A stretch of DNA of 64,000 bases, taken from contig QPMI01000572.1 of NCBI GenBank assembly GCA_004431415.1, positions 248,001 through 312,000 on the forward strand. Reading direction: 5' to 3'. This document shows, piece after piece, positions 7,871 through 26,100 of the stretch. The stretch is from Cyanophora paradoxa CCMP329. Lineage: Eukaryota; Plantae; Glaucophyta. The notes under the pieces are model-generated. The model did no database searches and was not told where the DNA came from. It saw nothing but the letters and a program-made list of their open reading frames with translations. The stretch's first letter is position 1; each line of letters starts with the position of its first letter. Both the position numbers and the translations under genes were made by a program.

Positions 7871-9069
7871 CCCGCTGGCTCCTCCCGCAGGCTGCGTGGA
7901 CGGTCAGCGTTGTTTGGAACGCCCAGGGCGGCGGCGCAGCGTCCTCTCCTCGCGCACGCGCCCTAAGGTGAACTCCACGTGCGGGGGCTCTTGCGAATTG
8001 AACGCCGGCGCTCCTAGGGCGTGGGCGCGCCGCTGGTGTGATCCATCGTGCACGGTTAGGAGATGTAGAGCTTCCGTGCAACTCCGCGCATTGCCGGTTG
8101 GGTCCGCAGCCGGCTGCTGCTGCTCCGATCAAAGCCGCCCACTTTTGAGCACTTCCGCCCGATCACAGCCACGAGCTTGAGCCGCGGCGCGCAGCTGTGG
8201 GCGGCGCGGGTGGTTCGGCCCGATTACACTCGTACCCCCGCCGGCAGTTCTGACGGGCTTCGTGAATCAAGGCTCCCGAGCAAGCAAGGCGACCACGATC
8301 GGCTCTGCCGGCTCGTCGGGGAGCCGCCCGGCTCCATCGACAACTCATCGCCGAGTCATCGGCGCAGCCCAGCCGCAGCGAGCTCGTCCGGGATCCCCGG
8401 AGACGCGAGCGCGATCGAGCAAGTCGTTTCTGCTGCTTCGTCCTGGTCCAGAACCGGTTCGTCGGGCGCCGTTGAGCAAGTCCTTGACCCGAAGCGAGCT
8501 ATCATTGCCGGCCGTCACGGCGTCACGGGCCGGGCTCGGCCGGCCGACTCGGCGAGCAGGGTGCTTCTGATCTACTCGCTTGCATCCGCTAAGCTTTCGT
8601 ACCAACTCCTTCCCCCGGGCGCCAGGGCTGTTCTATATCTAGAGCTGTCGACCCCCGTGCCGCGCGCGGCCGCGGCCGGCCTAACGAGTCCGCGGCCGAG
8701 CCAATGATGCATGCACATGCGCAGGCCACGCTGCTAGCGCTGTGCGGCACAGGAGCGGCGGCGAGCGACGCGCGAGCCTCGGAGCTCGGGCAAGATCATC
8801 CGAGCTGGCGCTCCGGTCCGACGGTCCTAGGCCTGCAGCTGCGCATGCTGCTTCGACCTGTCTCGAGCTCGCCGGCCGCGGGTGCGTTCGGCCTACTCGG
8901 CTATGCCTAGGCTTCCAACGAGCGCGATTGCGACTTGCGGGACTCGGGATGGCCCTGTTAATATAATAATTAATGTTAAAATTAGTGCCCTAGATCAAGA
9001 TCTGGCACCGCGGCCGGCCGCTGGCCGGCGCCCAGCTGCAGGCCGGGACCGGATGTGTGTCACAGTGTG

Positions 9070-9573
9070 TACCGTGTAACACTATATTATGACGGTCAAA
9101 TTTATGTCGTTATAAAACCCGACCCTTCTTTATGAGAAATACTGTAGGATTGCTTTTTTAGCCGATGTTTTAAATTGCCGTAAATTGCCGAGAGGCCGAA
9201 TTCGGCAATTTAGAGCCGCGGCAATGCTCAGGGGGTAGGCGTAAGCAACCGCTTTTGTGTGGCGCGGGATTGGCGCCATAGAATTCGAAGAAATCTAGCG
9301 TTTCGGCAATTTATCGCCATGGCAATTCCGGTTTTGGTCGAATTCGGCAATTTAACTACGCGGCAATTTAAGCATTCCTACAGTATGACGTCCCCAAATT
9401 ATGTCGTCATTAACTTTTCAGGCTTGTATGGGGACGGTAAATTTGGGGGGATACCACTGAACGTACCCTACTATGACGTCCCCGAATTATGTCGTCATGC
9501 CAAGTTTTCGGCGACATAATTTGGGGATGACATAATAAAGTGCGTACCTTAATATAGTGTTACACGTGCACGG
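9070..9573. mobile_element. MITE (TA-CCGT termini, Tc1/mariner-pogo-like), host of a nested MITE
   Basis: Left TIR taccgtgtaacactatatta (9070); right TIR taatatagtgttacacg[tgcac]gg (9550-9573); internal repeats aattatgtcg/atgacgtccc; no coding capacity. Confidence 0.8.
9140..9385. mobile_element. Nested MITE with TA target duplication
   Basis: TA-ctgtaggattgctt ... aagcattcctacag-TA; many internal aattgccg/cggcaatt units. Removing it restores the host motif aaatatgacgtcccc. Confidence 0.8.
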
Positions 9574-9734
9574 TTCATATACGTACGCGTTTGCTTGCAA
9601 TTGTTTAATATCGCGCCGCGGCGATCGCAAGGGCCTATTATAAAAAAGGCGTGCTTATTAAATTGCAAATTTTCAGTTGATCACGCGTATACGTACACGT
9701 ATGCAATCACCGCAGTTCGATCGGTGCCAGATTG

Positions 9735-12700
9735 ATGGATCCGGAGCTCGAGCTGGGGATCGAGGGCCAATCAATGGCTACTCGAAATCGGCCAGGCAAT
9801 GCTTCGCCCAGTCCGGTTGAGATGGAGCTCGACGAGTCAGCTAATGCTGCACGATCAGCATTCTCGAGTGCTAGCCCCGTTGACACCACGTCACCCATGG
9901 CCATCGAGTCTGGCTCGCTGCTTTCACAGCCGATCAGCAGCGCGGCTCCAGCTATGGATCCAGATCTAGATCTAGATCACCTCGTCGTCGATCTCTGCAT
10001 GGATCCGGACGGCACAGACAGCAATAATCGAAGCTGGATTGATTTCAAAGAAGAGCTCGAAAAGCGCGGAGTACAGCTTCGTCCTCTAAATCTGTAAGCA
10101 CCGCGAGCGCGCCGCGCTGTCTATAGATCTTTTCGTCTTCGAACTCTTCTCATGACAAATGCAGGCCTGACAATGATCAGGAGGGCCAGGTACAGCAGGC
10201 GGGACCTTCTGATGCCGGCGCACCACTCGTCTTTCTCGCATCTGCTCGGTCGGTACAAAAAGAAGATCTTGTGGAAATTCTATTGTCAAGTTCGTGCCAT
10301 GCTTCACGCCTTATCCATCGGCGCCCCGCCCAGCGGCGGTCCTGAACTGTAGTTTTGTCGGCGCAGAGGTCTACCGCGCCTCAGTGTTTGTCGTTCTGCT
10401 CGACACGTTCGAGCAGGTGTTCAACAGCGGCCTTCGCATGTGCCTCGGTGGCATTAATGTACGCATGCTCAGCGGCTCATGCTCATGATTATTGCAAATA
10501 TGAGCTCATTATCACTCACACAGGTCGAGAAGCTCTTTCTTTTCGGAAACCCCCGCGATCCCGGATACGGCGGTCGAATCGATGCTTTCAAGAAGGCGCT
10601 CGAGCGCATCAAACGTCCTTCATACCGGGAGCCCCATGCCGAGCTCACGCTGGCGCCATCAAGGGTTGGCAGGCCGAGGCCGCCTCCGGACTCGGGCGGT
10701 CAAACGTCCAGCCGCAGCTGGCCGATTGAAGATCCGACTGCGATTCGAGTGTTCGTCAGCTACTCGCGGTCGAACAAGTCCGCAGTACAGAGTATTCTCA
10801 ATGAACTGAAAACGCTTACTCGAGATCGAAACATTCATTTCTGGTGCGCATGCTACGTATACACCGCAAAGAGCACGTCTACGAAATATATAATTATAAC
10901 GCAAGCGCGCACACTGCAGGGTGGATTTTGAGCAGCTGTGGGCCGGTACGTCCTCTATGCAGGCCAGCGCCCCCTCCACGCGAGCTCCGTCTAACAAATA
11001 CATCCACTCTGCAAGGTGTGCGCTGGGTGGATGAAAGTGAGCACTTTGTATTGGATACTGCCTTTCTCGCGTTCAGCTCTTTTATTTCGGTACATGTTCG
11101 CTCATGGATTCCATGCGTAGTTGCAAGGGGTATTGAAGGAAGCACGCACTTTCTATTCTTTGCGTCACAATGCTCTGTAGAATCACAGTTCTGCAGAGGT
11201 GCGCAATTTGCTTATAGCGTATACGTCCTTAATTGGAACGGTAATTATAACGTCGCCTGCGCAGAGGAAATCGATTATGCCTACGTTCAGAAAAAGCGCA
11301 TCCTCATTTGTTATCTGGAGGAACGCTCTATTATAATGAGCTGCCTGAGCTCTCAATCGGCCGTGGGCTTGCGGATGCGCTGGCCATGGCCTTGCGAACA
11401 AAGGGAGAGTCAAGCGAGCGCAGCCGAAGTTATCTCTCGACTGCTGGGCCATGCGCATGTATCTGGCCAGCTTCCCGCTGCAGTGCGTGTTTCGTTGTAT
11501 ACGTGACGATGGCTTTAAAATTACCTGAGCCGCCCTGGATGTTATTGTGTTTTCCAATCGATCTGGCAGAGCGCAATCTGCGTAAACTGTGCAGTGGAGA
11601 GAAGGCCCAAGTGTGAAGCTCGGGGTGATGTCGCCTCCCAATGCGACAGCTGCGCAGATGCCGTTCTCATCCGCGGCGACCTTCATTTGTTCAATGAGCT
11701 CTTCGGTCCAGACGCAAGGGCCGACGAAACTCAACAGCATCTCATCATGCAGAACCGCGAGGTGTGCACGTTTCTCATATTATGACGGAAGACCATGCAT
11801 ATGATGACTAATGTAATACTAATCCTACTACTCGGTTGCAGTACTTGCCGTATGACATATGTCGGCGACATGTGAATGGATCCGGAGCGATATTCAATGT
11901 TCGACGCGTGCTGCCTCCGACGTCGACGTCGACCGACCGCGACATGACAACACCTGCGCTCGAGTTGGAGGTCTTTGAGCGGCACCCGTGCAGCGGTGAT
12001 GCCTCGTGGAGGGCGGCGCAGCGGGCCCTCGCCCATGCGGCGTGGTTTCGCTGCTACGGCGTCCCGACACTATGGGACTCTTGCGCTGCGCGCAAAGCGA
12101 TCGTGAAAACCCGTATATGCGGCCAAACGTCAGTTTTGGTTTTATAATTAATTCTTTCTTTCGGCCTATGATAAAATAATGACAATCTTCCACGGCCAGT
12201 GTTGAGCAGGACCTCAAAAGAGGCGGTGAATACGAAGTAGAACATGTGATCGATTTCTTGGAGCAGGTGCACGCTTTGGAATTCCAATTTATATCGCGCA
12301 ATGCAATGTTACAAAACAAGGTTTTGCAGATGTCCTTGATTTTTCACCACATTCACACATACGCCAAGCTCGCTCACCAGCGCATTTCAACTTCTGCTGT
12401 CCTTGTATCTGGTCGCTATCGTGATCACGGCATTCCTACGTTCGTTCCTGAATTTCTATTGCTTGTCATAGCCATCAGTCATTCTGCGGTCAGATTTATG
12501 CTCGAAGACCTTGGACTTGCCAGACGACTCCGAAGCACGCCGCCGCCAATTTTCGATAGCGATAATGATCGTGACGTGCGTCTGTGCACTCGCCTCGGAC
12601 GGTCGGACCTCATGACGACTGACCTCTGCTCTTGCAGGCCGCTCCGGATCCATTGAGTGCTCAGCATGAAGACATCGCAGGCATCGGAATCGTGGCTTTG

Positions 12701-15700
12701 TCGATGCTGTCAGGGTCTTTTCCCCGGCCCGCTGAAAAGAATGAAAAATGCAGCTGCAATCTGATAAGGATGATGTTTCCGCAGGGAATCCATTGGAAGA
12801 AACGACGCTCATTCTGCGTTCAGGGCGTTACAACCGACATTGATGCATGAGAGCTCAATGCTTAAAGTTTTAGACATAATTGCAAGAATTTTGGGGGTGC
12901 AAAACTCCCTCTGAAATGCTTAATTTCATACCGATCCTGCCTCCGTGTCGCACAGATTAGCACCGCGTCGTCACCCACTATAATTATCAAATCAGCTGTG
13001 GAGCTGTGGTCGTCCCTTCAGAAAGCCCAACTCCTTCGGCCTGAAAGAGGTGTCGTTCGAGCTTTATGATTATCAAGCTCGAGGTTCAAGCTTACGAAAT
13101 AGCAGACTTCGCGGCTTCCGAGAGCCCAGCAGTTCGAGCATCTGTATGGGGTCTACGAGCGAAAATGAGGGCCGCAAGCGCAGCCATTCATTGTGAATCT
13201 AGCAGCTCTAATACTGATGTGCGCCAAGAGGTAAGTAGCAATTTGCAACGTCAAATGTTTCATGATTACGTACACATGTACATACTCACCTTAAGCTTGG
13301 CTTCGAATTCACGGTCGATTAATCACCTGTGACTCTTCTTCCAATTGCGTAGATCGTGGACGTCTCCGTGAAACTAAGGGGCTCACCTTCTCTCGTCGAC
13401 CCTTTCGGCGTTCTAGAAGTGATGTTAGGTTTGGCAACGGCATCTCTACTGGTCCGGCAGGCCCTGAGGCCTTTGACGCCACGTCCGCCAATTTAAGCTC
13501 ACAGAGGGAGCCCCAGGCGCAGCACCAGTCGACGCCTGGATCGATTTTGCTCCTGCAGCTGATTCAAAGCCTCACAATCTCCAGTTTATCCCGGGTACGT
13601 ATACTTTCTTGGGCGTCAAATTCAAGTTATTGAATACATGTTTGATTACAGACAATTCAACGAATCTCGTCGGGTTGCGTCGCCATCGATCTCAAAATCC
13701 CCTCCTGGGTCGTTGCGGGGCTCAGACTTCTAGATCTGGACGCCAAGGAAGCCCTCAAACAGTGCGGCGTTCAAACCCTGTCGACGGCGTCGGAGCCGAT
13801 CCTGGAGATTCAAGGATCTGCAGATGAATTCGAAGGTCTGATCATCATTTGAGGGCACCCTCACACATGTACACAATCTGCAGCTTACTTCGTCATCAGA
13901 GGCAGTTCCAGCTGCAGATCTCAAGAACGGGTTCTGTCCGATAACTTGGGGCTCAAATGCATTCGTCTTGAGCGGATTTCAAGACAAAGATGGTTTCCCG
14001 GAGCTGCAAATGTCTTCTGTGGTTGAGCCCGACAGCGATGCCATTGCTGATCATGAGGCGAGGGCAACTCCTATAGTGGAGCTCGAGTGCTGCATGAGCA
14101 TTAACGAATTGATTACAAGCCAGGGGTCGGCTGCAGCCATAGCTGCAGCCGAGGTCATATTTACGGCGCTAGCCGCGGAGGAGACATGTTTCGCTGGAGC
14201 ATCGAAACCAGATTCTAATTCGTTTATTCACGGCAGCTCGCTTGCATGCGCAATGGCCACGACCCTCGCCCCAGCGGCAGTCACGTCGTGGACTGAACCA
14301 GCGTCTGCACGTGTCCAGAAGCGACCACGCACACCAACCGCAGACTCGGCAAACTCTGGAAATGGAGAGCAGCCAAAGGCCAAGCAGCCGCGCCGCGAGC
14401 TGCGCATTTTTATCTCTTCTACATTTCGTGCGCCCTTTAACTATTACTGTTACTCAGTGACTCTTGTCCCTGATGTTCGGTCCTTTGTCCGGGTCATGTA
14501 TGCGCAGAGGACATGGCGGAAGAGCGCGACGAGATCCGCTCCGTGGTATATCCGAGGCTGCGCGCCCTATGCGCCGAGCGCGGCCTCTTCCTTCACATCA
14601 GCGACCTCCGGTGCGCTGGCCACGGCCATGCTAGCGCTACAGGTCGATATCCTGCTGTTTAGATCTTTCACCGTTTGAAGTTGCAGTCCTATATATGTCC
14701 AGTCCTGATTTATCTGGCTACTTCTGGCTCATTAAATCTGCTCATCGCTGCATGTCCACGCAGTTGGGGCATTCGCGACGAGGAGGTTGCGAACGGCGAG
14801 GTGCGGCTTGCAACCGGGCTTTTAGAAGAATCAAACGTTCCGGAATTTCTTTCGATTGCAACACTTTGATCGCGACAGGTCATACGTCTCTGCCTCCGGG
14901 AGGTGCAGCGGAGCTCATATTTCGTTGGATTGATCAAAGGTACGTTAACACCCTTTGACGTTAACACCCATCCCGACTCAAACGTTAACGGTTGCGCAGG
15001 GCGATACGGCTGGCACGTGAACCCAGCGGCCTCCATGGTAGACGACGCTGATGTACTCTACAAAAGGTGCATACACAAAATTTCCGCATTCGCAGTCATA
15101 ATATCTGAATAGGAAGGAATAGGAATTCTAGCCATAAGTACTAGTGTGAACAGGAAGGAAATTCGTGCAGGAATCTGCGGGTAGCCGCCAAGGAGTTTCC
15201 CTGGGTGGAGGCTTGGCACGACCGCTCAATTACCGAGCTCGGTGTGGTTTCTGTTATTGGTTTACTCTGATCATGATTCGCACTGGAGGATTGTGCTTCG
15301 TGCAGCTGCACGCCTCAATTATAATGACATTCATTTCCGCAGAGATCCGTGCAGGGGCCCTTCGCAATCTGCCGGTGCCATCGATTGCATTTAAATTTCT
15401 CTAGCTCTCAGCCTGATTCGAATTCTTTTCCAGGCTGCACGAGACAAGAGTTTGTTTTACCTCGCAGAGGAGGAGACGCGAGGCGCAGCCGAAGGATCTC
15501 ACGCAGCGATGCGTCTGGAAGAGCTGCAGAGTGAAATTCGAAGCTCCGGCCTTCCTGTAGCACGCTTCAAGGGTGCAGAGCAGCTCGCGTTGACCTTGCG
15601 CGATTCCCTTGCCGAGGTCCGCTTCTGCTTCTGCACACAACACAGCAGCTCAGCGCTATAGCTAGCTGACACAACAGCTACCATAATGTTTGTTTGGCTT

Positions 15701-18700
15701 AATTTGAATCTTTGGTGCGCAGATGATTGAACGCGACTACCCCCTTGGTCAGCAACAGACGTGGCTGGAGAAGGAGCGGGCTGCGCAGGCGGCGTTTGCA
15801 GCGGCGCGACAGAGGACATTCGTCGGCGACCCGCACGATGCAACTGCCCTCGATGCCTACGCTAAAGCGGACGGGCCGGAAATCTTCGTGCTGCACGGGG
15901 CTGGCGGGTGCGGGAAAAGCGGTGCGCATGCGCTATGCTATTGGGTTTAAATTATATTCTCCTCGAGCTCACGAGCGGCGATCAGCTGTGCTCGCGAACT
16001 GGTCGGCGCAGTGGAGTGGCAAGCATCCTGAAGATCTCACGATCGCCCACTTCATTGGAGGATCGCAGAGCAGCTCCTTCCTCTCTTCCGTCGCCCGGTG
16101 AGAACACGTGCCGGGCGGCAGCTAGCGCTGGAGATATATACATTGCTACTAATACGAATTCGAAGGCGCCTCAGCGAAGAGGTCAAGCAGAAATGGCCAC
16201 AAGAAGATGGCTTCAAATGGCACGGAAGCGATGCCGAAGTGGCGGATCAGCTCAAGGCTTGGCTTGTCAAGGGTGCACCATGGTTGCCAGGGCGACTGGT
16301 GCTGGTTATCGACGCGCTCGACCAGCTGCGGGGCGGCCCCGCCGCCCGTTCGCTCAGCTGGCTCCGGACCGCTGCGAGCCCCAGGCTTCGGATCATCGTT
16401 TCAAGTGCCCCTGGTGCGGTTCCTGCCGCGTCCTGCGAGCTATCTTTTAGTGACCTCTCCTAATTATGATCATGAGCAGGCTTTGCCCTTAGCAGAGCGC
16501 TCGCGTTGCCCCACACACAACAGCGAGAGCTAGGAGCTCTTACTGAAGACAGACGGCGTGAGATCTTGCGGCGCATTTTGCAGGAGCAGGGTCGAACGCT
16601 CAGTGAGAGGCATGTCAATCGCATTGTTGCTGCGCCCGCCTGTGCAAATGCGTAAGTTCTTCATTTCACGATTCAGCCGTAGCTCACTTCGTCTGAATTT
16701 CATTCTGATCATGATCAGACTGCACCTGCGAACGCTGCTGGAGGAGCTATCAGCAGTGGCTGTGCACTCGACATTAGACACTGTCCTTTCTTCTTGCCTC
16801 GCTTGCCAAGGGCCGCGGGACCTCTTTCGCCTTGTCCTCCGCCGCCTGGTGCAACAGCACAATTACAGCGCCAAGGAAGGAGGCGAGAGATCCGTGGCGC
16901 CGGCATTGTTCGCCGGCGCGGTCGTCTGCTCGCGCCATGGTATGGCGGAAAGCGAGCTGTCCGAGTTCCTCGAAGTTGGCGAACACGGGTCGCTGACGCA
17001 GGTGCGTGCAGTATGATCAGGATTTTTAAAAAGATCCAGATCTAGAGCTATCTATATGTGGTTTTCGAAATTATATGCTCGGATGGTCCAATGCTCGGAA
17101 ATTATATGTAATTATAATGACGGCTTCTTTTATAGGTCCAATGGAGCCTGTTGTGGTACGGCATGCTTCCTATGCTTGTTGACCGAGGTAATGCACTCTT
17201 CGCGCCCAATGCGTTCTAACTATATTTTGATCTGCACTGAGAGTAGCTAATTCGGTTCAGATGGTCTATTCGGGTTCTTTCACCGCTGTGCTGCTGAGGC
17301 GAGTCAACGTTCGCGGGCAGTTCCCTGCATTTGTAACCCTGACTCTCGACCAGGCAGCCGAACTTGAATTCGGATTGTCGAAAGAGGGGTCGGATCCGGA
17401 AGGTCTGCTGGAAGAGGCCGCGTGCATCGAGCGCCGACGGATGCTGCATGCTCGGCTTGGCGAGTTCTTCATCGCGAGAGAGCCGACACAGCGTCGCGCG
17501 GATGAGGCGCCGTGGGCGCTTGCGCAGGCGGGAGCCGAGCACGGAAACAGCCTCGCAAAACTTCTCTGCGACGCGGACCTAGTGCAACGGCTGGACGAGT
17601 ACGAGCTCGCGTCGCTCTGGCTCAAGAGCGGGAAATCGCAGGAGGCGGCTGCGCGTTATGCGGAGCGCCTGGGCCTCTACACCGCGAGCACCGTCCACCA
17701 CGCTGTCGGCCTCGAGCGCGCCGCTGAAGTGCTTCAAGCGATGGGTCGATCAAAAGAAGGGTTTAGATTTCTGAAGGTATGTGCGCATGTTAACGTTATA
17801 ATTAGTGAGCAGGCTTTTAATTTAGCTCTAGCACAAGTACGTCTAGATCTTAAATATTGAAATTAATCCGTCGCTTCTTCAAGTCCATCGCGATCGCCTT
17901 GCCTTATAAATCGTTTTACGTGTAAAGCGGTCCCTGGAGATCAAGGAGGAGGCCTGCGGTTCCGAGCATCCAGACACGGCAAAGACGCTCCGCAGTCTGG
18001 CAGATATACATCACGAGATGGGCGAGTATGCCAAAGCGCTGCCGCTGTACGAGGTGCGGTGTTATGTAATTAATTAATTGATTAATTATAATGCATACGC
18101 ATTCGTACTCTGGCCATTCAACAACGGCCAGCGTACTCTGGCCATTCAAGAAAATTCGAGTGCATGCGGTCCGGAACATCCTGAAACTGCGAAGACGGTC
18201 CATAATCTGGCGAATCTGTACGACAGTATGAGAAACGACTCAGAGGCTCAGAAGCTCTACCGAGTGCGTTCAGATCTCGTAATATAACGGTGCAACAACG
18301 ACGGCGTGATATATCGATGTCGCAGCGGGCCTTGGTGATTCAGGAGAAGGCATGCGGTCCCGAGCATCCAGACACGGCGAAGACACTGCAAGGCTTGGCA
18401 TTTCAGTACAGGGAAGCAGGCAAGTACGCAGAGGCACTGCCGTTGTTCGAGGTGCGTTGAATTTTGATTTGCAAGCTATCTTGGCCTTCTAATGCAAAAT
18501 CAGGATTCTTTGGCGATTGTGGAGAAATTATTTGGCCTCGAGCATCCCAAAACAGCGACTGCTCTGCAAGGTCTGGCAGGGCTATTCCGGGAGATGGGCG
18601 AGCACTCCAAGGCGCTGCCATTGTACGAGGTGCATAATGATTGGAATTACGGGCTGATTTTACAGGCGGGTCGGGGTGGCTGGCTAACATGCGGGCTGGT

Positions 18701-21700
18701 CATGGTTTTCTAGCGATCCCGTGCAATCTCGGAGAAAGCTTGTGGACTGGAGCACCCTGCCACAGCGGCGATTCTGCTGAGCCTGGCAAGACTCTACGAG
18801 GACATGCAAAACGACGAGATGGCTGTGCTGCTTTACACGGTGCATCCAATCGATGTTAATCATAAGCTCGAGGGCTCTTCGGAACGAAATCTGATTCTGA
18901 AACACGCATCCTGCATTAACATTGTGCAAAATGCGCAGCGCTCTCTTGAGATTTTTGAAAAAACGTACGGCCCCGAACATCCTGAAACCGAGGCGACTCT
19001 GCACGGCCTTGCAAGAACGTACGAAACGATGGGCGATTACTTGGAAGCGCTACCGCTTTTCAAGGTAGCTACAGCATTTATCATGCGGGTGGCCCATTGA
19101 GTATTGGGAGGCCATTGCGGGGCCGCCGCGAAGGCTGATTGCATATGCATGTACAGCGGAGCCTCGCGCTCAAGGAAAAGGCGTGCGGACCCGAGCACCC
19201 AAGCACGGCGAAAATGCTGCGCCGCCTCGCAGATCTGTACGCCGAATTGAGCGATCACGACAAAGCAATCTCTCTTTATCAAGTGCGGTGACGATTATAT
19301 AACAGATGATCATGAATAATCATTATTAGAAGGACCATCTGCGATGCGTATGCTGATATATATATATATCCACTGCAGCGGTCCGTCGAGATCACCAACA
19401 ATGCGTGCGGACCCGAGCACCCAGACACCGCAGAATCGCTGCACGGCCTAGCGGGGCTGTACCGAGACATGGGCGACTATGCTAAGGCACTTCCTCTGTA
19501 CGAGGTGTGCGGCTCCCGTGCACGCAGTTGCTGAGTTGTTGTTGACATTTTTACTTTGGTTGCCGGCCAGCTAATTCTAATCATTATCATACATTTAAAT
19601 TCCGGGTGTGCATGAAATTCCGGGCCGGGGCTGATAGGAAGCGGGACGGCGCCGCGCAGCAAGAGCTTGATATCCACAAGAAAGGACCCCTCTGCGAGGA
19701 TCAAGATTACAACATAGCTGGGACGCTACAAAGCCTGGCGAAGGTGCACCAGGGGATGTCAGAGTACGCCAAGGCGTTGCCATTGTTCCAGGTCCGCAAT
19801 TGCAATCGTGAAATCGAATTCGAACGCGATCTAAATATACATATGTCCCTATATCTACGATTTTATCATCAGATCTTGCCGATTTCAAACGCTAGCTGTG
19901 GGTAATATAAGTGTGTGTATATAGTATGATTTTAGACTTTTTATTTTCAGTCAGAGCAGCTGGTTTCTAAAACAATCTAGAGTTGACCAGATGATGGTGA
20001 TGGTGTTGACAACACGCAGCGGAGCCTCGCGCTCAAGAATCAGGCGTGTGGTCCCGAGGACCCAAGCACGGCGCGGACTATGCACGGCCTCGCCGATCTG
20101 TACGTCGATATGGGCGAGTACGCCGAGGCGCTTCCACTGTACGAGGTGCACGACCTCAAGATTCCTCGGGGGGGGGGGGGGGGGGGGGGGGGAAGGGGGA
20201 GGGGGGTACCGGTCCTTCTAAGAGTTCTGTACAGTGCGTGCACATCCACTGGTCCATCACCCGTCTAGATCTTGCGGCTGCAGCTGCGGGCTGCACCGAC
20301 GTCCTTTAAACTCTTGAGCTCTTAAGCTTAAGCTGTTTTAGTGATGCATAGGGCAGGCGGTATTTGTAAGCTGCTGCTTTTTCAAACCTCTATCGACGCA
20401 GCACTCTCTGAAGATCTGTGAGGAGGCTTGCGGCGCGGAAGACGATGACACGGCTGCGACACTGTACGGTCTGGCGGAGCTCTACCGGGAGACGGGCGAA
20501 TTCGCGAAGGCGCTGCCGCTGCACCAGGTGAGTCTTTTGTGCAGTACATGAAAAATCAATGGAGTACTATTTCTGACAGTGAAATGCATCGGGGCTTGCG
20601 TTGCAGCGGTCGCTCGCTATCTCGGAGAAGTCCAAGGCGTGCGGACCCGAACACCCTAACACGGCGGTAAGTTTGGAAGGGATGGCAAGGTTGTACCGCG
20701 AGACAGGTGATTTTGCAAAGGCGCTGCCACTACTGGAGGTGCGCGACTTAATATATGTACTAGTATTGCAGATTGAATGAACTGACCGGAGGCTGACCGC
20801 GATTCTGCACAGAGGTCCCTCGAGATCACGGAGAAGACGTATGGTCCCGAGAGCCCCGGCATGGCTTCGACGTTCCACGATATGGCCGTCTTGTACCACG
20901 TGATGGGTGAAGATACGAAGGCGTCGCCATTGTACGAGGTGCGCAGCGTGCGGGTCTCGCGGCGAAAGTTGCATGTAGCAGATAAGGACATGCAGCGCGA
21001 GCTATCGCTGATCATGATCATGACCGTCGGACGGGGGCATGCGTGCGGCGCATCTGACTAATTAATCTGACTACGTAGAATTGCTCTCGCGCAATCTAGA
21101 AGAGCAAAAGCGGTATACTGATTTAGAGCTGCTTTAATCTGATTATTTTAGCTCGACCAAATGTTATTGGACGTGCCAAAATCTGATCATAATCAGAGCT
21201 AAAATAATCAGATTAATTATATAAAGCAGCTCGCCCTGGCCATGGACGTGCTAGCGCTGATCATGATCATAACCGTCGACGGGGGCATGCGGCGCAGAGA
21301 TCTCTCGAGATCAGAGAGAAAGCGTGTGGCATCGATCACCCGGACACCGCGGAAACTCTCCTCTGGAAGGGGCGCCTGCTGTCGGATCGCGGGGACCTTG
21401 CTGGAGCACGCCCAATCCTGGAGGTGCGACGACCGCGATATCAGAGGATATTGCACACAGGATTCACCTAATTACAATATAACTGCAACGCAGCGGTCGC
21501 TGAGGATCCTGCGGGAGAAGCTCGGGGGCCGGCACCCGCGGGTCGCGCGGGGGGCGACGTCCCTCGCGGAGCTGCTGGCGCGGGCGGGCGAGCACGCCGA
21601 GGCCCAGCGGCTCCTCGAGGCGAGCGCCCGCCCCCGCTAAGCTTAGCTTCTAAGCTAAGGCGCCCTGCCTGCAGGAGGCGATGGGGATCTGGGAGGCCGC

Positions 21701-21985
21701 GCGGGCGGCGTTCGCGGTGGGCCGCGTGCACCCCGACGCGGCGGAGACGCTGCACGCGATGGGCACCCTTGCTGCCGCGCGGGGCCGCCCGCACGAGGCC
21801 CGCGCCCACTTCGAGGTGCGGCTTGCACTTGGCCCGGATTCGGGTATACGTATCGAAGGCAATTAATGTACATTGACGGGCCGTCGGCGCCGGGACCGCA
21901 GGGGGCGCTGGCGATGCTGCGGGAGCGGCTCGGGGAGGGGCACCCCAAGGCGCTCCGCACCGCCGCCGCCGTCGCCGCCCTCTGA
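9735..21985 (+). CDS. NLR-like STAND protein: TIR - unknown region - DUF4062 - NACHT (NPHP3/TEP1-like) - TPR array; may be one gene or two adjacent genes
   Basis: Same-strand exons from ATG 9735 to TGA 21985, with the domains listed separately below. Exon 13652-14427 links the upstream region to DUF4062 if a single extra T near 13850 is discounted. Exons between ~11.6 and 13.6 kb were not fully resolved. Confidence 0.6.
10742..11330 (+). other. TIR domain (TIR_2-like), 5 exons
   Basis: Spliced: IRVFVSYSRSNKSAVQSILNELKTLTRDRNIHFW|VDFEQLWA|GVRWVDE|IARGIEGSTHFLFFASQCSVESQFCR|EEIDYAYVQKKRILICYLEE. Matches F(I/V)SYS...W.D...G..W...I..GI..S...S.(W/F)C..E(L/I)..A. Confidence 0.88.
14395..15070 (+). 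other. DUF4062 domain
   Basis: Spliced: RELRIFISSTF|DMAEERDEIRSVVYPRLRALCAERGLFLHISDLR|WGIRDEEVANGE|VIRLCLREVQRSSYFVGLIK|GRYGW. This is the FISSTF.DM..ER...DLRWG...CL.EV...F.G..G.RYG signature seen N-terminal to NACHT in TEP1/NWD/NPHP3-like proteins. Confidence 0.88.
15723..17001 (+). other. NACHT/STAND P-loop NTPase domain
   Basis: RTFVG; Walker A VLHGAGGCGKS (~15888-15920); AVLANW; IAHFIG; Walker B LVLVIDALDQL (~16296-16328); RIIVS; CAN|LHLRTLLEEL; SRHGMAESEL. Confidence 0.88.
17928..21985 (+). repeat. Array of 16 complete TPR (42-aa, kinesin-light-chain/TPR_10-like) repeats plus a terminal partial repeat, one repeat per exon
   Basis: Exons: 17928-18053, 18132-18263, 18326-18451, 18504-18629, 18714-18839, 18939-19064, 19157-19282, 19379-19504, 19660-19791, 20020-20145, 20402-20527, 20607-20738, 20813-20938, 21298-21423, 21494-21619, 21675-21815, 21902-21985. 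Consensus RSL.I.EKACGPEHP.TA.TL..LA.LY..MG.Y.KALPLYE. Confidence 0.95.
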
Positions 21986-23159
21986 AACAAGTGCACGCGC
22001 GCCTCATCGAATATCGAAGAGAGCCCGCGGTCGAAGAAATGTTAACGTTGTTAGAAATCAGCGGGCATGTGTTGCAAGAATAATTCAGGGTTTATATATT
22101 TACATCCAGCAGACGCTGTCTCCTCTTGTGAGCTCCTGCAGCTGTCGTAGAGTGTTTTGTCTGCTGTGGAAATTCGTTCAAATTCCATTATCCTTTCACA
22201 TCGTCTCATGCAGTGTATACCGTTACACTTGAAACGTTCTGGGCTCAACTTTGAAACTGGCAAGATCTAGAGCGTCGTGTCACAACTTGAGTGCAGTACT
22301 AGTATACGTAAAGCTCGCGATTTGTATGTGTACATGTACATGTAATTATAAACGCATTTGCGCAATTTCCAATTGCGCCCCGTGGGCCCAGCGGCCGTGC
22401 CGGCGTGGCATGCGCACGTGCCACGCGGATATATCGGACGTCGGCGTATGCCGCGGTACGCGTCGGCGGATATATCAGCTGATTCGGATCTAGACTCTAG
22501 ATCTGCAGCTGAGAGTCCAGTAGATCTAGATCTAATCTAAAGTCGCCCGCGGCCGCCGGCTCGCCGCCGACTAGTACAGTGACTACTACATGTACAGTCA
22601 CTGAGCCTCGACTCTCTCGAGCTCGGATCCGGAGTAGTATACGTAGTACCGGACCGTCGGACCGGGAGTCACCGGACCGGCGCAGCACTGGTACCGGTAA
22701 TCGCCGCCGAGTCAGCGCCGACTAGTACTCCGACTCTAGTCTCCGAGGCGCCCTGCCGCCGGCTCGCCGGAGTCGCCGGCCGAGGCGACTCGCCGCCCGG
22801 CGGGCCGGCGGCGGCGCGGCCCTCCGCGGCCGGACGATTAACCGTGTGTTGAACGTTCAACGGCCGGTTGCCAAAGTTGGTGGTACCGTAGTACCGGTTG
22901 GCCCAGTGGGGTTCGGTCCGGCCGCCGGCCGCCCGGGCAGGCGGTGCCAGGCGCGCCCCGCGCGCGCGCCCGCGGCCGGCCGGCCGCGCGCGGGCCGCCC
23001 GGGCGCCGCCGGAGTGCACGTGGGCGGCCGGACCCGGCCGGCGGCCGCGGGAGCGCCGGGCCGGGGGATCCGGCCGGGACCGGCCCATCATCCGGGCCCG
23101 GGGAGCTTCCCGAAGCTAAGCCAATTAATATTGCAAGGCCCAATTTTGGCCAAGGCAGC

Positions 23160-26100
23160 AAGCCGGCCCAACGACCCCATCAACTTCGACATCATCTTCC
23201 CGTGGAAGGAGGACCTGCAGCGCGCTGCGCAGGTTCGCTTTTGCAATTCGTACTCTCGATGGCCTCATGGCCTTTTCCGGCCTCATGGCCCGCCCCTCGC
23301 AATCGATCCGATCTCCTCTCTTTCTCTCTTGCATGACTTTCTCGATCTTGCAGGCCGCTGCTGCGTCCACCTCGGGATCGGCGTGAGGCGTTCGGGCCCC
23401 CCATCGATTCCCGCTGCGTTTCGCGGCGGGGTCGATCCCTCGGCCCTCCCCTCGCCCCCGGCCCTCGTTTTCTCTTCCGGCTCTTGGGCTTTGTCCCTCG
23501 AGCTGTACCACCCCCCGTAAATGACGTTTAGGTTTCTTTCTCTGAACGTAGCAGGCAAACTAGATCGAGCTTTTCATGATGTATTAGGCAAATCTTATCG
23601 TTCTTTTCTCTTTGATTGCCTCCGCGATAGCGCGCGGCATTCAGCTGTGTTCCTGCAGGAGACTCATGTTTCTTCTTCCTCATTATCCAAGCGCCTCGCG
23701 CGCGCCTGGGGATCGGCCCCTCTTTTTGGTCTCATAACCCTAGTGGTCAGGCCACTCAGGGGGTTGCCGCTCTCTTTCCTGGTGATTCCCTTTTCAAATT
23801 CGGTTGTTGACTCCAGCTGATAGTCCTCGACTTCAACTTTTCTTGTTCGAGACCAAATTTGGTCCCATTTATTTTTGCAATGTATATGCTCCTACAGATG
23901 ATTCTGAGCGTCGCGGTTTCTATGAAACTCTTCTTTATACTCTCGAGTCCGTGGTTCCTTTCGACAGCCGCCTCATCTTAGGAGGAGATTTTAATTTCCA
24001 CGAGCTCCCCTCTGATGCTCCCGGCCCTAGTCGTGGAACCCCTCCCCCGACGCCTTTGAGTTGATCCGAGCTCGTTATGGCCTTTTCGATGCCGGGCCTC
24101 ACACTAGAGCGTGCTTTAAAACCTGGAGCCGGCCGCGGCCGGCGGGCGGGACGATTGAGTCCCGGCTCGATTATTTTTTCCTCTCGTCCTCCCTCCGCGA
24201 TTGGGCCGTCTCGCTTCGGCCGTGGACGGCTTACTCTGCAGTTGGCGAGCCACGCAATTCTGATCATATAGGCATCTATCTCACACTTAAAGCCCCGGAA
24301 TCTCTCGCCGTGGCCCCGGTCGCTGGCGCATGAACTGGGCGGCGTATGGGACATGCCCGGAATATTCTGGTTTCATTTCTACTATAATTCGTGACTGGCG
24401 CGCCGCGTGGCCATTAGTTACAGATCGCGTCCGTCGGTGGGACGCCCTCAAATCCGAGCTCCAGCGTCGTGTTCGGGCCTGGGAGCTTGATGAGAAGCGC
24501 AGGCGGAAGGACGCTTACATCTCCGCTGTTCGAGCTCTCGAGGCTCTCATCCGTCGCCACGCCGCTGGCTCTATTGATGATGTCGCTTTCCGTACACTGC
24601 GCACTTCTATGATGCGCAGCTTGAATTCGCTTGTGTCTGACTATGCCAGACAGCATTCACGCAAAGAAATTCGTTTCGCCGCAACTCAAGATGGACGGTC
24701 TAGTAAAGCTTTTTTTGAGCATTATTTACCGGATTCTCATGCTCAGTTCCCGGAGGGGCTTCGGGCCCTCGACACCGAAGGCCCAGAGGCCGCGTCGGAC
24801 GACCCCCGCACTTTGCTCGAGCTTTCTTCCGCCTATTACGCTCAACTATATGACGGCGCTGCAGCTCAGGCCGCGGTTGATCGGTCGCTAGCTGAGCGGT
24901 CTGGCGTTGCCTCTCTCTATTCCCCTCACCGCCTGCTCCCTACTGAGTCTGCTGATCTTGACTCTGACTTATCGTCTGGAGAACTATTTCGTGCTTTTAA
25001 GGAGATGTCTGGCGGAGCCAAGTCTCCTGGCATCGATGGTCTCCCTGCTGAATTCTACGTTCACTTTTTTGATGAGATTGGCCCCGATTTCTGTGCTTAC
25101 ATCGCTGCTATGTATGAGTCTGGGCAGCCGTCCGAGTCTTTGCGGCACGTCCTCATTACTCCTATTACTAAACCGGCAACGGACCCTACTTTGATTGCAA
25201 ATCGCCGCCCAATTTCTCTCTCTAATGTCGAAGAGCGTGCAGTCGAGCGCGCCCTCTCCAACCGCTTAACGCCACTCATGTCTGGTCTTGTATCCCGCTT
25301 TCAGTCTGGCTTTATTCATCGTCGGTCCGCAGTGCACCAGGTTATGCTTGTTTATCTTCTCATGCATTACGAGGGCGGTAATCCTGCACTTGAACAGCTG
25401 TGCTTCGGATTTCTTGATTTTTCAAAAGCCTATGACCGCGTTAACTGGAGCTTCCTTTTCTGGTCGCTCGAACAGTTCGGTTTCGGGTCCCAATTTATCA
25501 AGTGGGTCCGCCTGCTCTACTCTGATCTGCAGGGTTCTGTTCACATTAACGGCTGGACCTCCGCCCCTTTCCCCATTCGATGCGGTGTACGTCAGGGTGG
25601 CCCCTTTCGCCCTATCTATATAATTTGTGCACACACCTTTTAGCCCTTTTGATTAATGCTGATGCTCGTATACGAGGTGTCCGCTTGTCCTCTAGCTCTC
25701 TTTGCAAGGTGCTCCAGTTTGCAGACGACACGGTTCCTTTAATCTCGTCTTTTACCGAATTGCCTTTCTGGAAAGAGTGCTTTGATAAATACTGCCGGCT
25801 CTCTGGAGCTCTTATTAATCTCGAGAAATCTAGCCTTCTTCCACTCCGCGATATCCCGCACATGCCTGGCCTAGCGTCGAGGACTGCCCCTGGCGGCGTC
25901 TTCAGGTGACGGATCTCCCTCCCGCTGAAAAAATTCGAAAATACCTGGGCTTTCCACTAGAGCCCGATCTGTCTCGGTTCTGGCGGAAAAAGACCGCTGC
26001 TCTTGATATCCGTGTCCAGCAAGCGAAGACTTATCGCATGCCGATGCGTTCCGGCGTTCTCCTTGCCTGGGCTGTATTTATTGGGTCCCTACATTATGCT

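Follow-up and report, generated by a model that had tools for sequence, protein, structure and literature searches.

The locus that we analysed in Cyanophora paradoxa, within a stretch of 64,000 nucleotides (the window), probably comprises two separate neighbours on the + strand, a TIR gene (gene 1) and, 2.5 kb downstream of it, an NLR-like gene (gene 2). Gene 1, at about 9.7 or 10.5 to 11.5 kb, would have four or five exons and encode a protein of roughly 240–370 residues, the C-terminal half of which would be a divergent, TIR_2/SARM1-type TIR domain with the glutamate used by TIR NADases; the product may act as an independent TIR enzyme or adaptor. Gene 2, from 14.0 to about 21.9 kb, would encode a STAND receptor-like protein in which an N-terminal DUF4062/NIR domain (a TIR-like NADase) is followed by a NACHT NTPase, an NPHP3-type helical domain and a TPR array. 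Fusion of the two into one receptor is not supported, and the locus is therefore most likely a notable neighbourhood and no new receptor design. Because no transcript or gene model was retrieved, the splice sites and gene ends given below for both genes are predictions; their expression, enzymatic activity and mechanism we infer.

The downstream DUF4062-NACHT-TPR gene on the same strand, recognised already in the initial annotation, is firmly supported by the sequence comparisons. A profile built from an alignment of 22 relatives (profile A1) matched it exon by exon, with 12.8, 49.9, 9.9, 26.2, 7.6, 23.2 and 46.6 bits, plus 48.5 bits for the linker and P-loop, and the matches were colinear from 14364 to 15929, amounting to about 225 bits over eight pieces including the next exon. 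Together with tblastn of the relatives, these matches place the gene's own ATG exon (N1) at 14010–14427 and the DUF4062/NIR and linker exons at 14508–14610, 14764–14800, 14879–14939, 15000–15066, 15171–15241, 15343–15374 and 15434–15616, so that the first eight exons span 14010–15616. The NACHT exons, followed by the NPHP3-type helical and first TPR-like region, occupy 15723–17776, as judged by Pfam on each exon and colinear tblastn matches to paralogs. The stretch singled out in the initial annotation ends at 17776, where the non-repeat part of the gene stops; beyond that point the gene continues, according to tblastn of the relatives, as a TPR array with one TPR per exon (17900–21900), the presumed sensor.

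Coverage by tblastn of 91 relatives was confined to 14.2–21.5 kb. The relatives share the architecture DUF4062-NACHT-NPHP3_hel-TPR, with DUF4062 starting at residues 2–168, and gene 2 is colinear with, and 37–85% identical to, paralogs scoring above the threshold for NACHT; the best paralog, P0023, reaches 85% identity within a single exon. Pfam detected DUF4062 (PF13271, E 0.02), NPHP3_N (E 0.005) and NACHT (PF05729, E 0.01) on single exons, and NPHP3_N, NACHT and TPR_NPHP3 remained below threshold on individual window exons while exceeding it in the relatives. Walker A (GAGGCGKS, at about 15900–15921) and Walker B (LVLVIDALD, at about 16296–16322) motifs are both present. A search with the paralog P0002 (672–2138 aa) returned paralogs and bacterial relatives, and not the window's own gene model.

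The relatives' family profile matched the structure of the TIR-like NADase domain of human TEP1 (11gz_A) with an E-value of 1e-42. In the window, the sequence DRSITEL|EIR supplies both glutamates of the SxTExE motif, the first encoded at 15235–15237 and the second split across G15241 and AG15343–15344; in the alignment, E134 never varies and conservation of E136 is at least 90%. The second glutamate hinges on the predicted splice 15241|15343, as the pairing 15243|15345 would give glycine instead. We regard this domain as NADase-type, with catalytic-motif glutamates and predicted activity. The background given in the initial annotation, that TIR domains with this Glu are NAD+ hydrolases in plant NLRs, SARM1 and bacterial defence and that DUF4062 has a related fold, is correct and now stands on stronger ground: three 2026 preprints demonstrate that DUF4062 is a TIR-like NADase.

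Gene 2, as judged from its sequence, is an already described type of receptor, with a DUF4062/NIR NADase, a NACHT switch and a TPR sensor. NLR-like proteins with an N-terminal NADase domain of the DUF4062 ("NIR") type have been described across eukaryotes, and in vitro human TEP1 is active as an NADase while human NPHP3 and NWD1/2 are inactive (bioRxiv 10.64898/2026.05.01.722283, 10.64898/2026.09.04.749371). Like the eukaryotic NIR-NACHT proteins TEP1, NWD1/2, TTC41 and NPHP3 and the bacterial NIR-Avs2, it combines an N-terminal DUF4062 carrying the Glu motif with a NACHT, a helical domain and a repeat sensor, the last being made of TPRs as in NPHP3, TTC41 and Avs2. It differs from the described proteins in belonging to a family of glaucophyte paralogs in which each TPR has its own exon and in having a probable canonical TIR gene directly upstream, an arrangement not found in either of these preprints (bioRxiv 10.64898/2026.05.01.722283, 10.64898/2026.09.04.749371). 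The likely mechanism, drawn from what is described for TEP1 and the bacterial Avs/NIR systems, is that a ligand would bind the TPRs, the ligand-bound TPRs would drive oligomerisation of the NACHT, and this would gather the NIR domains and switch on NAD+ hydrolysis.

Upstream, a TIR identity is probable from the sequence. The tentative first coding exon of gene 1 (E0, 9735–10093), delimited by ATG 9735 and donor GTAAGC at 10094, could be spliced in frame to E1 at 10505 and has a weakly positive codon score of 0.10 bit per codon, above that of the other frames; it matched no family in Pfam or in the NCBIfam/PADLOC searches. Alternatively, the gene may start at ATG 10479, 10485 or 10500 inside E1. 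E1 (10505–10843; donor GTGCGC at 10844) would encode an unassigned N-terminal stretch and then TIR strand A, helix A and strand B (IRVFVSYSRSNKSAVQSILNELKTLTRDRNIHFW). E2 (10920–11017; donor GTGCGC at 11018; VDFEQLWAG...KYIHSAR), placed from reading frame and splice sites, would contribute the BB loop and helix B; we prefer it by inference to a shorter form ending at 10945 with donor GTACGT. E3 (11121–11198; ARGIEGSTHFLFFASQCSVESQFCR), reading ...STHFLFFASQCSVESQFCR, would supply strand C and the first part of helix C before the donor GTGCGC at 11199, and the last exon, E4 (11265–11506; EEIDYAYVQKKRILICYLEE...), carries the candidate catalytic Glu codon GAA at 11267–11269 and ends in the stop TGA at 11504–11506. 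Transposable elements lie at 9.07–9.57 kb and at about 24–26 kb, and a repeat search found no second copy of the 9–14 kb stretch within the window.

The string SQFCREEIDYA, with its Glu, had been reported from an intron-containing TIR_2-like domain. It does exist, but only after removal of a GT-AG intron of 66 nt (11199–11264) that splits it, and the match to Pfam TIR_2 (PF13676) reached 15.9 bits (E 0.019, profile positions 45–92) against a curated cut-off of 28, on the unspliced in-frame read-through of E3, intron and E4 alone (11120–11332). Feature neighbours in the ESM-Atlas were TIR_2 clusters for the E3/E4 piece (0.90) and TIR_2/SEFIR clusters for E1 alone (0.86–0.87), scores that shuffled sequences reach 4–10% of the time. 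Against a bacterial TIR_2/SEFIR profile of our own making, E1 ranked first among 124 stop-free stretches (7.9 bits, positions 3–32), and hhalign gave it a probability of 60% (E 8e-5). When a bacterial SARM1-like TIR (L012), the nearest of the bacterial comparators and itself closest to the TIR of SARM1, was used as the query against the 124 stretches, E4 and E1 were the top two matches, in colinear order. In SQFCR|EEIDYAY the Glu lies in helix C with an aromatic residue four residues before it, and phmmer pairs the second Glu of EEIDYAY with the Glu of CAWEVELAY in L012. Based on this alignment and on known SARM1/TIR motifs, the second Glu is a candidate for the catalytic position and would correspond to SARM1 E642.

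Other searches with the TIR pieces gave little: phmmer against the PDB yielded nothing meaningful, NCBIfam and PADLOC were blank, a metagenome scan found no relatives, and a word-index protein search with the E3/E4 frame (128–408 aa) had no match, nor did a mixed query of E1, E3/E4 and the first exon of gene 2 (gene model or transcript ORF of about 80–330 aa). Comparison of E3/E4 with a bacterial SEFIR-like profile by hhalign produced a spurious 12-column match alone. The idea that E1 is a diverged copy of the first exon of gene 2 was dropped, as BLASTP detected no similarity, and the DUF4062 profile did not match the TIR exons.

Compared with SARM1-type/TIR_2 NADases and the TIR-only proteins of plants and bacteria, gene 1 shares strand A (VFVSYSR), strand C-helix C with its Glu (S..S.FC..E) and strand D (K(K)RI..(I)). 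Unlike them, it scores below the Pfam cut-off, the C-terminal third of its domain is unrecognised, the model chosen for E2 gives it either a 16-residue insert or a shortened helix B, and the roughly 230 residues before the TIR gave no sign of a SAM, LRR or other partner domain.

We consider it unlikely, while giving it some weight, that the TIR-like exons belong to a pseudogene, decaying or no longer expressed, beside an intact NLR-like gene. Besides the sub-threshold Pfam score and the nearby transposable elements, this reading draws on the codon score, which does not rise above zero in E1's TIR core or in E3, where codon-usage support is nil; this scoring was trained on the exons of gene 2 and is too weak to decide the TIR exons. 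The acceptors before E3 (TAG) and E1 (GAG) are atypical, and the 59 in-frame residues between strand D and the stop, corresponding to the C-terminal third of the domain, are matched by no profile. Moreover, an out-of-frame stretch, ELPELSIGRGLADALAMAL (frame of 11314), looks as TIR-like as the in-frame one, which might point to a frameshift. Against this, all the exons stay open and in consistent phase until one terminal stop is reached, the strand-A motif of E1 and the Glu are intact, and the three in-phase donors are exactly GTGCGC, GTGCG being the local donor consensus with a strong strand bias (30 on + versus 7 on −). No database protein holds the TIR exons, but the intact-looking neighbour is missing from the database as well, and the absence of gene 1 there thus says little.

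The initial annotation had also offered a single NLR with two nucleotide-processing domains. One gene of the order TIR-DUF4062-NACHT-TPR, with two NADase-type domains, would need a splice, constitutive or in an isoform, from near the end of E4 across a 2.4 kb intron into an exon at 13.88–14.4 kb. The two parts share a strand with no recognisable gene between them; if a consensus-like phase-0 donor (GTGCGT, 11483), seven codons ahead of the stop, were joined to a phase-0 acceptor (ctgcag|, 13884), the frame would run on uninterrupted as far as the DUF4062 exon; three more GTGCG sites lie within the spacer, and one relative (P0017) has an N-terminus of 630 residues without an assigned domain. 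However, local introns measure 60–410 nt, the TIR reading frame closes at the TGA, and the ATG exon of gene 2 has an in-frame stop ahead of it. The codon score is −0.09 per codon before ATG 14010 and becomes positive, at +0.12, only in N1, which starts there; 13842–14009 scores as non-coding. Paralog N-termini match 14.2–14.4 kb and begin nearby, and the approximately 130 residues that gene 2 has before DUF4062 fall within the paralog range of 39–168. A search for the same architecture in relatives found TIR or TIR_2 combined with DUF4062 in 0 of 91 (19 scanned with Pfam, 72 with precomputed Pfam lists). The TGA, the ATG exon that gene 2 has to itself, the exon colinearity and the lack of a fusion in relatives are observed directly, and we hold a single gene to be quite improbable.

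The spacer itself (11507–14009) shows no detectable coding and has a TGTAA at 11812. Coding-like exons had been reported in it, and this did not hold up: 11.5–13.97 kb matched neither Pfam nor any of the 91 relatives, and its long open frames are expected from local composition (Markov simulation, P = 0.11 for at least 233 codons). A DUF4062-linker-like match at 13105–13269 scored 3 bits, the level of noise.

The other proposal, a linked effector gene and sensor gene, agrees with the anatomy of two same-strand genes 2.5 kb apart, while cooperation between them is conjecture and their adjacency could be chance. We think it quite improbable that the canonical TIR and NIR-NACHT-TPR work as one unit, be it through an isoform with two different NADase-type domains in tandem before one NACHT or as a pair of co-regulated genes, one NAD-processing domain producing a signal and the other executing or amplifying it.

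Finally, it is very unlikely that the TIR likeness arose by chance, from short motifs in the non-coding DNA that precedes gene 2: every single score is weak (E about 0.02 and the atlas scores above) and the region had been chosen by eye for this likeness, but two exons, independently of each other, match neighbouring and colinear segments of TIR profiles that come from different sources, in-phase consensus splice sites connect these exons, and they lead the ranking for an unrelated bacterial TIR.

The two separate neighbours that we favour recall plant TNLs, TIR-NBARC-TPR proteins (TNPs) and paired or clustered NLR loci in bringing a TIR-type effector, a STAND NTPase and a repeat sensor to one locus, and the TPR sensor of gene 2 resembles that of TNPs. 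Here, however, TIR and NTPase apparently belong to separate genes, and the NTPase is a NACHT, unlike the NB-ARC of TNLs and TNPs, already equipped with a NADase-type domain of its own. A TIR protein encoded beside a protein with an NAD-degrading domain also occurs in bacterial Thoeris, with its TIR sensor ThsB and NADase effector ThsA; in contrast to Thoeris, the present locus is eukaryotic and spliced, with no SLOG/SIR2 effector and no operon, and any signalling between its two proteins is conjectural.

As it stands, the locus adds one further paralog to a family surveyed across eukaryotes in 2026, and one further probable TIR gene, and its chief practical value is the corrected exon map. Should gene 1 and gene 2 act together, the locus would unite, in a eukaryote, TIR and NIR/DUF4062, two related immune domains that cleave NAD, and would help to show how signalling through NAD was set up at a time when plant and animal lineages had yet to settle on designs of their own.

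The DUF4062-NACHT-TPR architecture reported downstream of the TIR held up well, and the NLR-like gene, as read from the DNA, is a solid identification of a DUF4062-NACHT-helical-TPR gene. Its predicted ATG exon (14010–14427, plus strand, ending ...RRELRIFISSTF) is followed on the same strand by seven short exons with which a DUF4062 domain and a linker are completed, a P-loop exon FVLHGAGGCGKS (15723–15921), NACHT exons at 15986–16097, 16166–16413 (with LVLVIDALD) and 16480–16651, a helical region up to 17776, and a TPR array of one TPR per exon extending to about 21.9 kb. Scanned exon by exon, all Pfam matches were below threshold (DUF4062 0.02, NPHP3_N 0.005, NACHT 0.01, TPR_NPHP3 0.02), as expected of single exons, which are fragments. 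All-against-all HMMER with a 209-aa query (17231–17857) gave 22 relatives, the best 52% identical, and the 19 scanned with Pfam have the order DUF4062, NACHT/NPHP3_N, NPHP3_hel and TPR_12/TPR_NPHP3, with DUF4062 starting at residues 2–168. A profile of the N-terminal regions of the 22 relatives (A1) matched the exons at 14364–15929 in perfect colinearity, with about 225 bits summed, and matched the crystal-structure sequence of the TIR-like NADase domain of human TEP1 (11gz_A) with an E-value of 1e-42.

Our findings favour the TIR gene and the NLR-like gene being two separate genes, and the anatomy of the linked-genes reading in the initial annotation is thereby borne out: the TIR frame is closed by a stop at 11504, and after about 2.5 kb the first exon of the NLR-like gene opens with the ATG at 14010, ahead of which lies an in-frame stop. 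Codon scores are negative before this ATG and positive beyond it, paralog alignments begin at 14238, and the N-terminal length ahead of DUF4062 is about 130 aa, with 39–168 aa in the paralogs. The coding-like exons proposed between TIR and DUF4062 were not recovered, as the 2.5 kb after the TIR stop had no Pfam match and no similarity to the 91 fetched relatives, and the lengths of its open frames do not exceed those given by second-order Markov simulation of the same DNA (P = 0.11). A fusion or isoform made by splicing could in principle use the consensus-like phase-0 donor GTGCGT at 11483, seven codons ahead of the TIR stop, and the phase-0 acceptor at 13884, which keeps frame with it; however, the required intron of 2.4 kb compares with local introns of 60–410 nt, and we consider such a transcript improbable. 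The combination of TIR_2 with DUF4062 is absent among the relatives, whose list holds a single TIR_2 match, a bacterial TIR-ATPase-TPR protein without DUF4062 (P0064), and with the stop at 11504 and the separate ATG at 14010 this makes a double effector in one NLR unlikely. Taken as a whole, the initial observation is partly confirmed.

As read from the DNA, the plus-strand TIR gene comprises E1, ending at 10843 (...IRVFVSYSRSNKSAVQSILNELKTLTRDRNIHFW), E2 at 10920–11017 (VDFEQLWAG...KYIHSAR, or a shorter form up to 10945), E3 at 11121–11198 (ARGIEGSTHFLFFASQCSVESQFCR) and E4 at 11265–11506 (EEIDYAYVQKKRILICYLEE...), which closes with TGA at 11504. The motif SQFCREEIDYA is present with its Glu after predicted splicing but is not contiguous in the DNA, being interrupted by a 66-nt intron (11199–11264) that is in frame, stop-free and directly before the Glu codon. 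If retained, this intron would add 22 residues to helix C without truncation. The three internal donors share the sequence GTGCGC and are in phase, and GTGCG occurs 30 times on the plus strand vs. 7 on the minus strand in 9.57–22 kb, mostly at NLR-like exon ends; from this strand bias and position we take it to be the local donor consensus. As the dominant coding-strand splice donor in 9571–22000, GTGCG(N) could serve for orienting and delimiting genes in the Cyanophora paradoxa genome.

These upstream pieces probably encode a TIR, an identification weaker than that of the NLR-like gene. The model was searched exon by exon, so that scores are those of partial domains, and TIR_2 on E3, intron and E4 reached only 15.9 bits (E 0.019) vs. 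the Pfam cut-off of 28, the 66 residues spanning only 48 TIR_2 positions (45–92), so the intron acts as an insertion in the alignment. Language-model neighbours of this piece were TIR_2 clusters (0.90), and those of E1 alone TIR_2/SEFIR clusters (0.86–0.87). With a profile of 14 bacterial TIR_2/SEFIR domains, E1 ranked top of 124 plus-strand stop-free stretches in 9.5–17 kb (positions 3–32, 7.9 bits), and hhalign gave a probability of 60% (E 8e-5). When the bacterial TIR L012, whose nearest PDB entry is the TIR of SARM1, served as query, E4 and E1 were the two best matches, in colinear order, with its helix-C Glu aligned to the second Glu of CREEIDYAY. The pieces had no matches in PDB, NCBIfam or PADLOC, the last 59 residues were recognised by no profile, no protein containing the exons was found in protein databases, and codon-usage scoring was uninformative for them. 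That the gene is intact and expressed is rather likely. Read in the frame of 11314, which is not that of the exon, 11314–11400 gives NELPELSIGRGLADALAMAL immediately after the strand-D residues ILICYLEE; this resembles the usual TIR continuation and may be the trace of a 1-nt frameshift that arose long ago in the last TIR exon.

The window is eukaryotic with a GC content of 65–83%, except at 9000–30000 (50–58%), an island that contains both genes together with transposable elements and may be due to low recombination, to a recent insertion or to a region rich in TEs. A 494-bp MITE-like element (9073–9566) immediately precedes the putative start of the TIR gene; its terminal inverted repeats are perfect over 17 nt (CGTGTAACACTATATTA / TAATATAGTGTTACACG), and its interior holds further repeats, both direct and inverted. 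The NLR-like gene is followed downstream by a retroelement in a T-rich, skewed stretch at 22–30 kb, where a plus-strand open frame of 437 aa (24330–25640) encodes a reverse-transcriptase domain (RVT_1, E 2e-17).

Three 2026 preprints show DUF4062, renamed NIR, to be a TIR-like NADase that possesses a catalytic Glu and acts both in several antiphage systems and in the human protein TEP1; a EukProt-wide survey found NIR to be N-terminal in most of the eukaryotic NLR-like proteins that have it. Both Glu residues of the S-x-T-E-x-E signature are present in the NLR-like gene, reading DRSITEL/EIR across a predicted splice; in the A1 alignment E134 does not vary, and conservation of E136 is at least 90%. 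The second Glu codon is split by the intron (G/AG, 15241–15345), and splicing shifted by 2 bases (donor 15244, acceptor after 15344) would leave the frame intact and give Gly in place of Glu, conceivably a splice-level on/off switch of the catalytic residue, though it may mean nothing. Because Cyanophora-type paralogs are abundant (a dozen or more in protein searches), the side-by-side position of the TIR and NLR-like genes is weak evidence of a functional link. As NLR-like proteins with DUF4062/NIR have already been described in eukaryotes, the NLR-like gene, by its predicted domains, is a new paralog within the described NIR-NACHT type.
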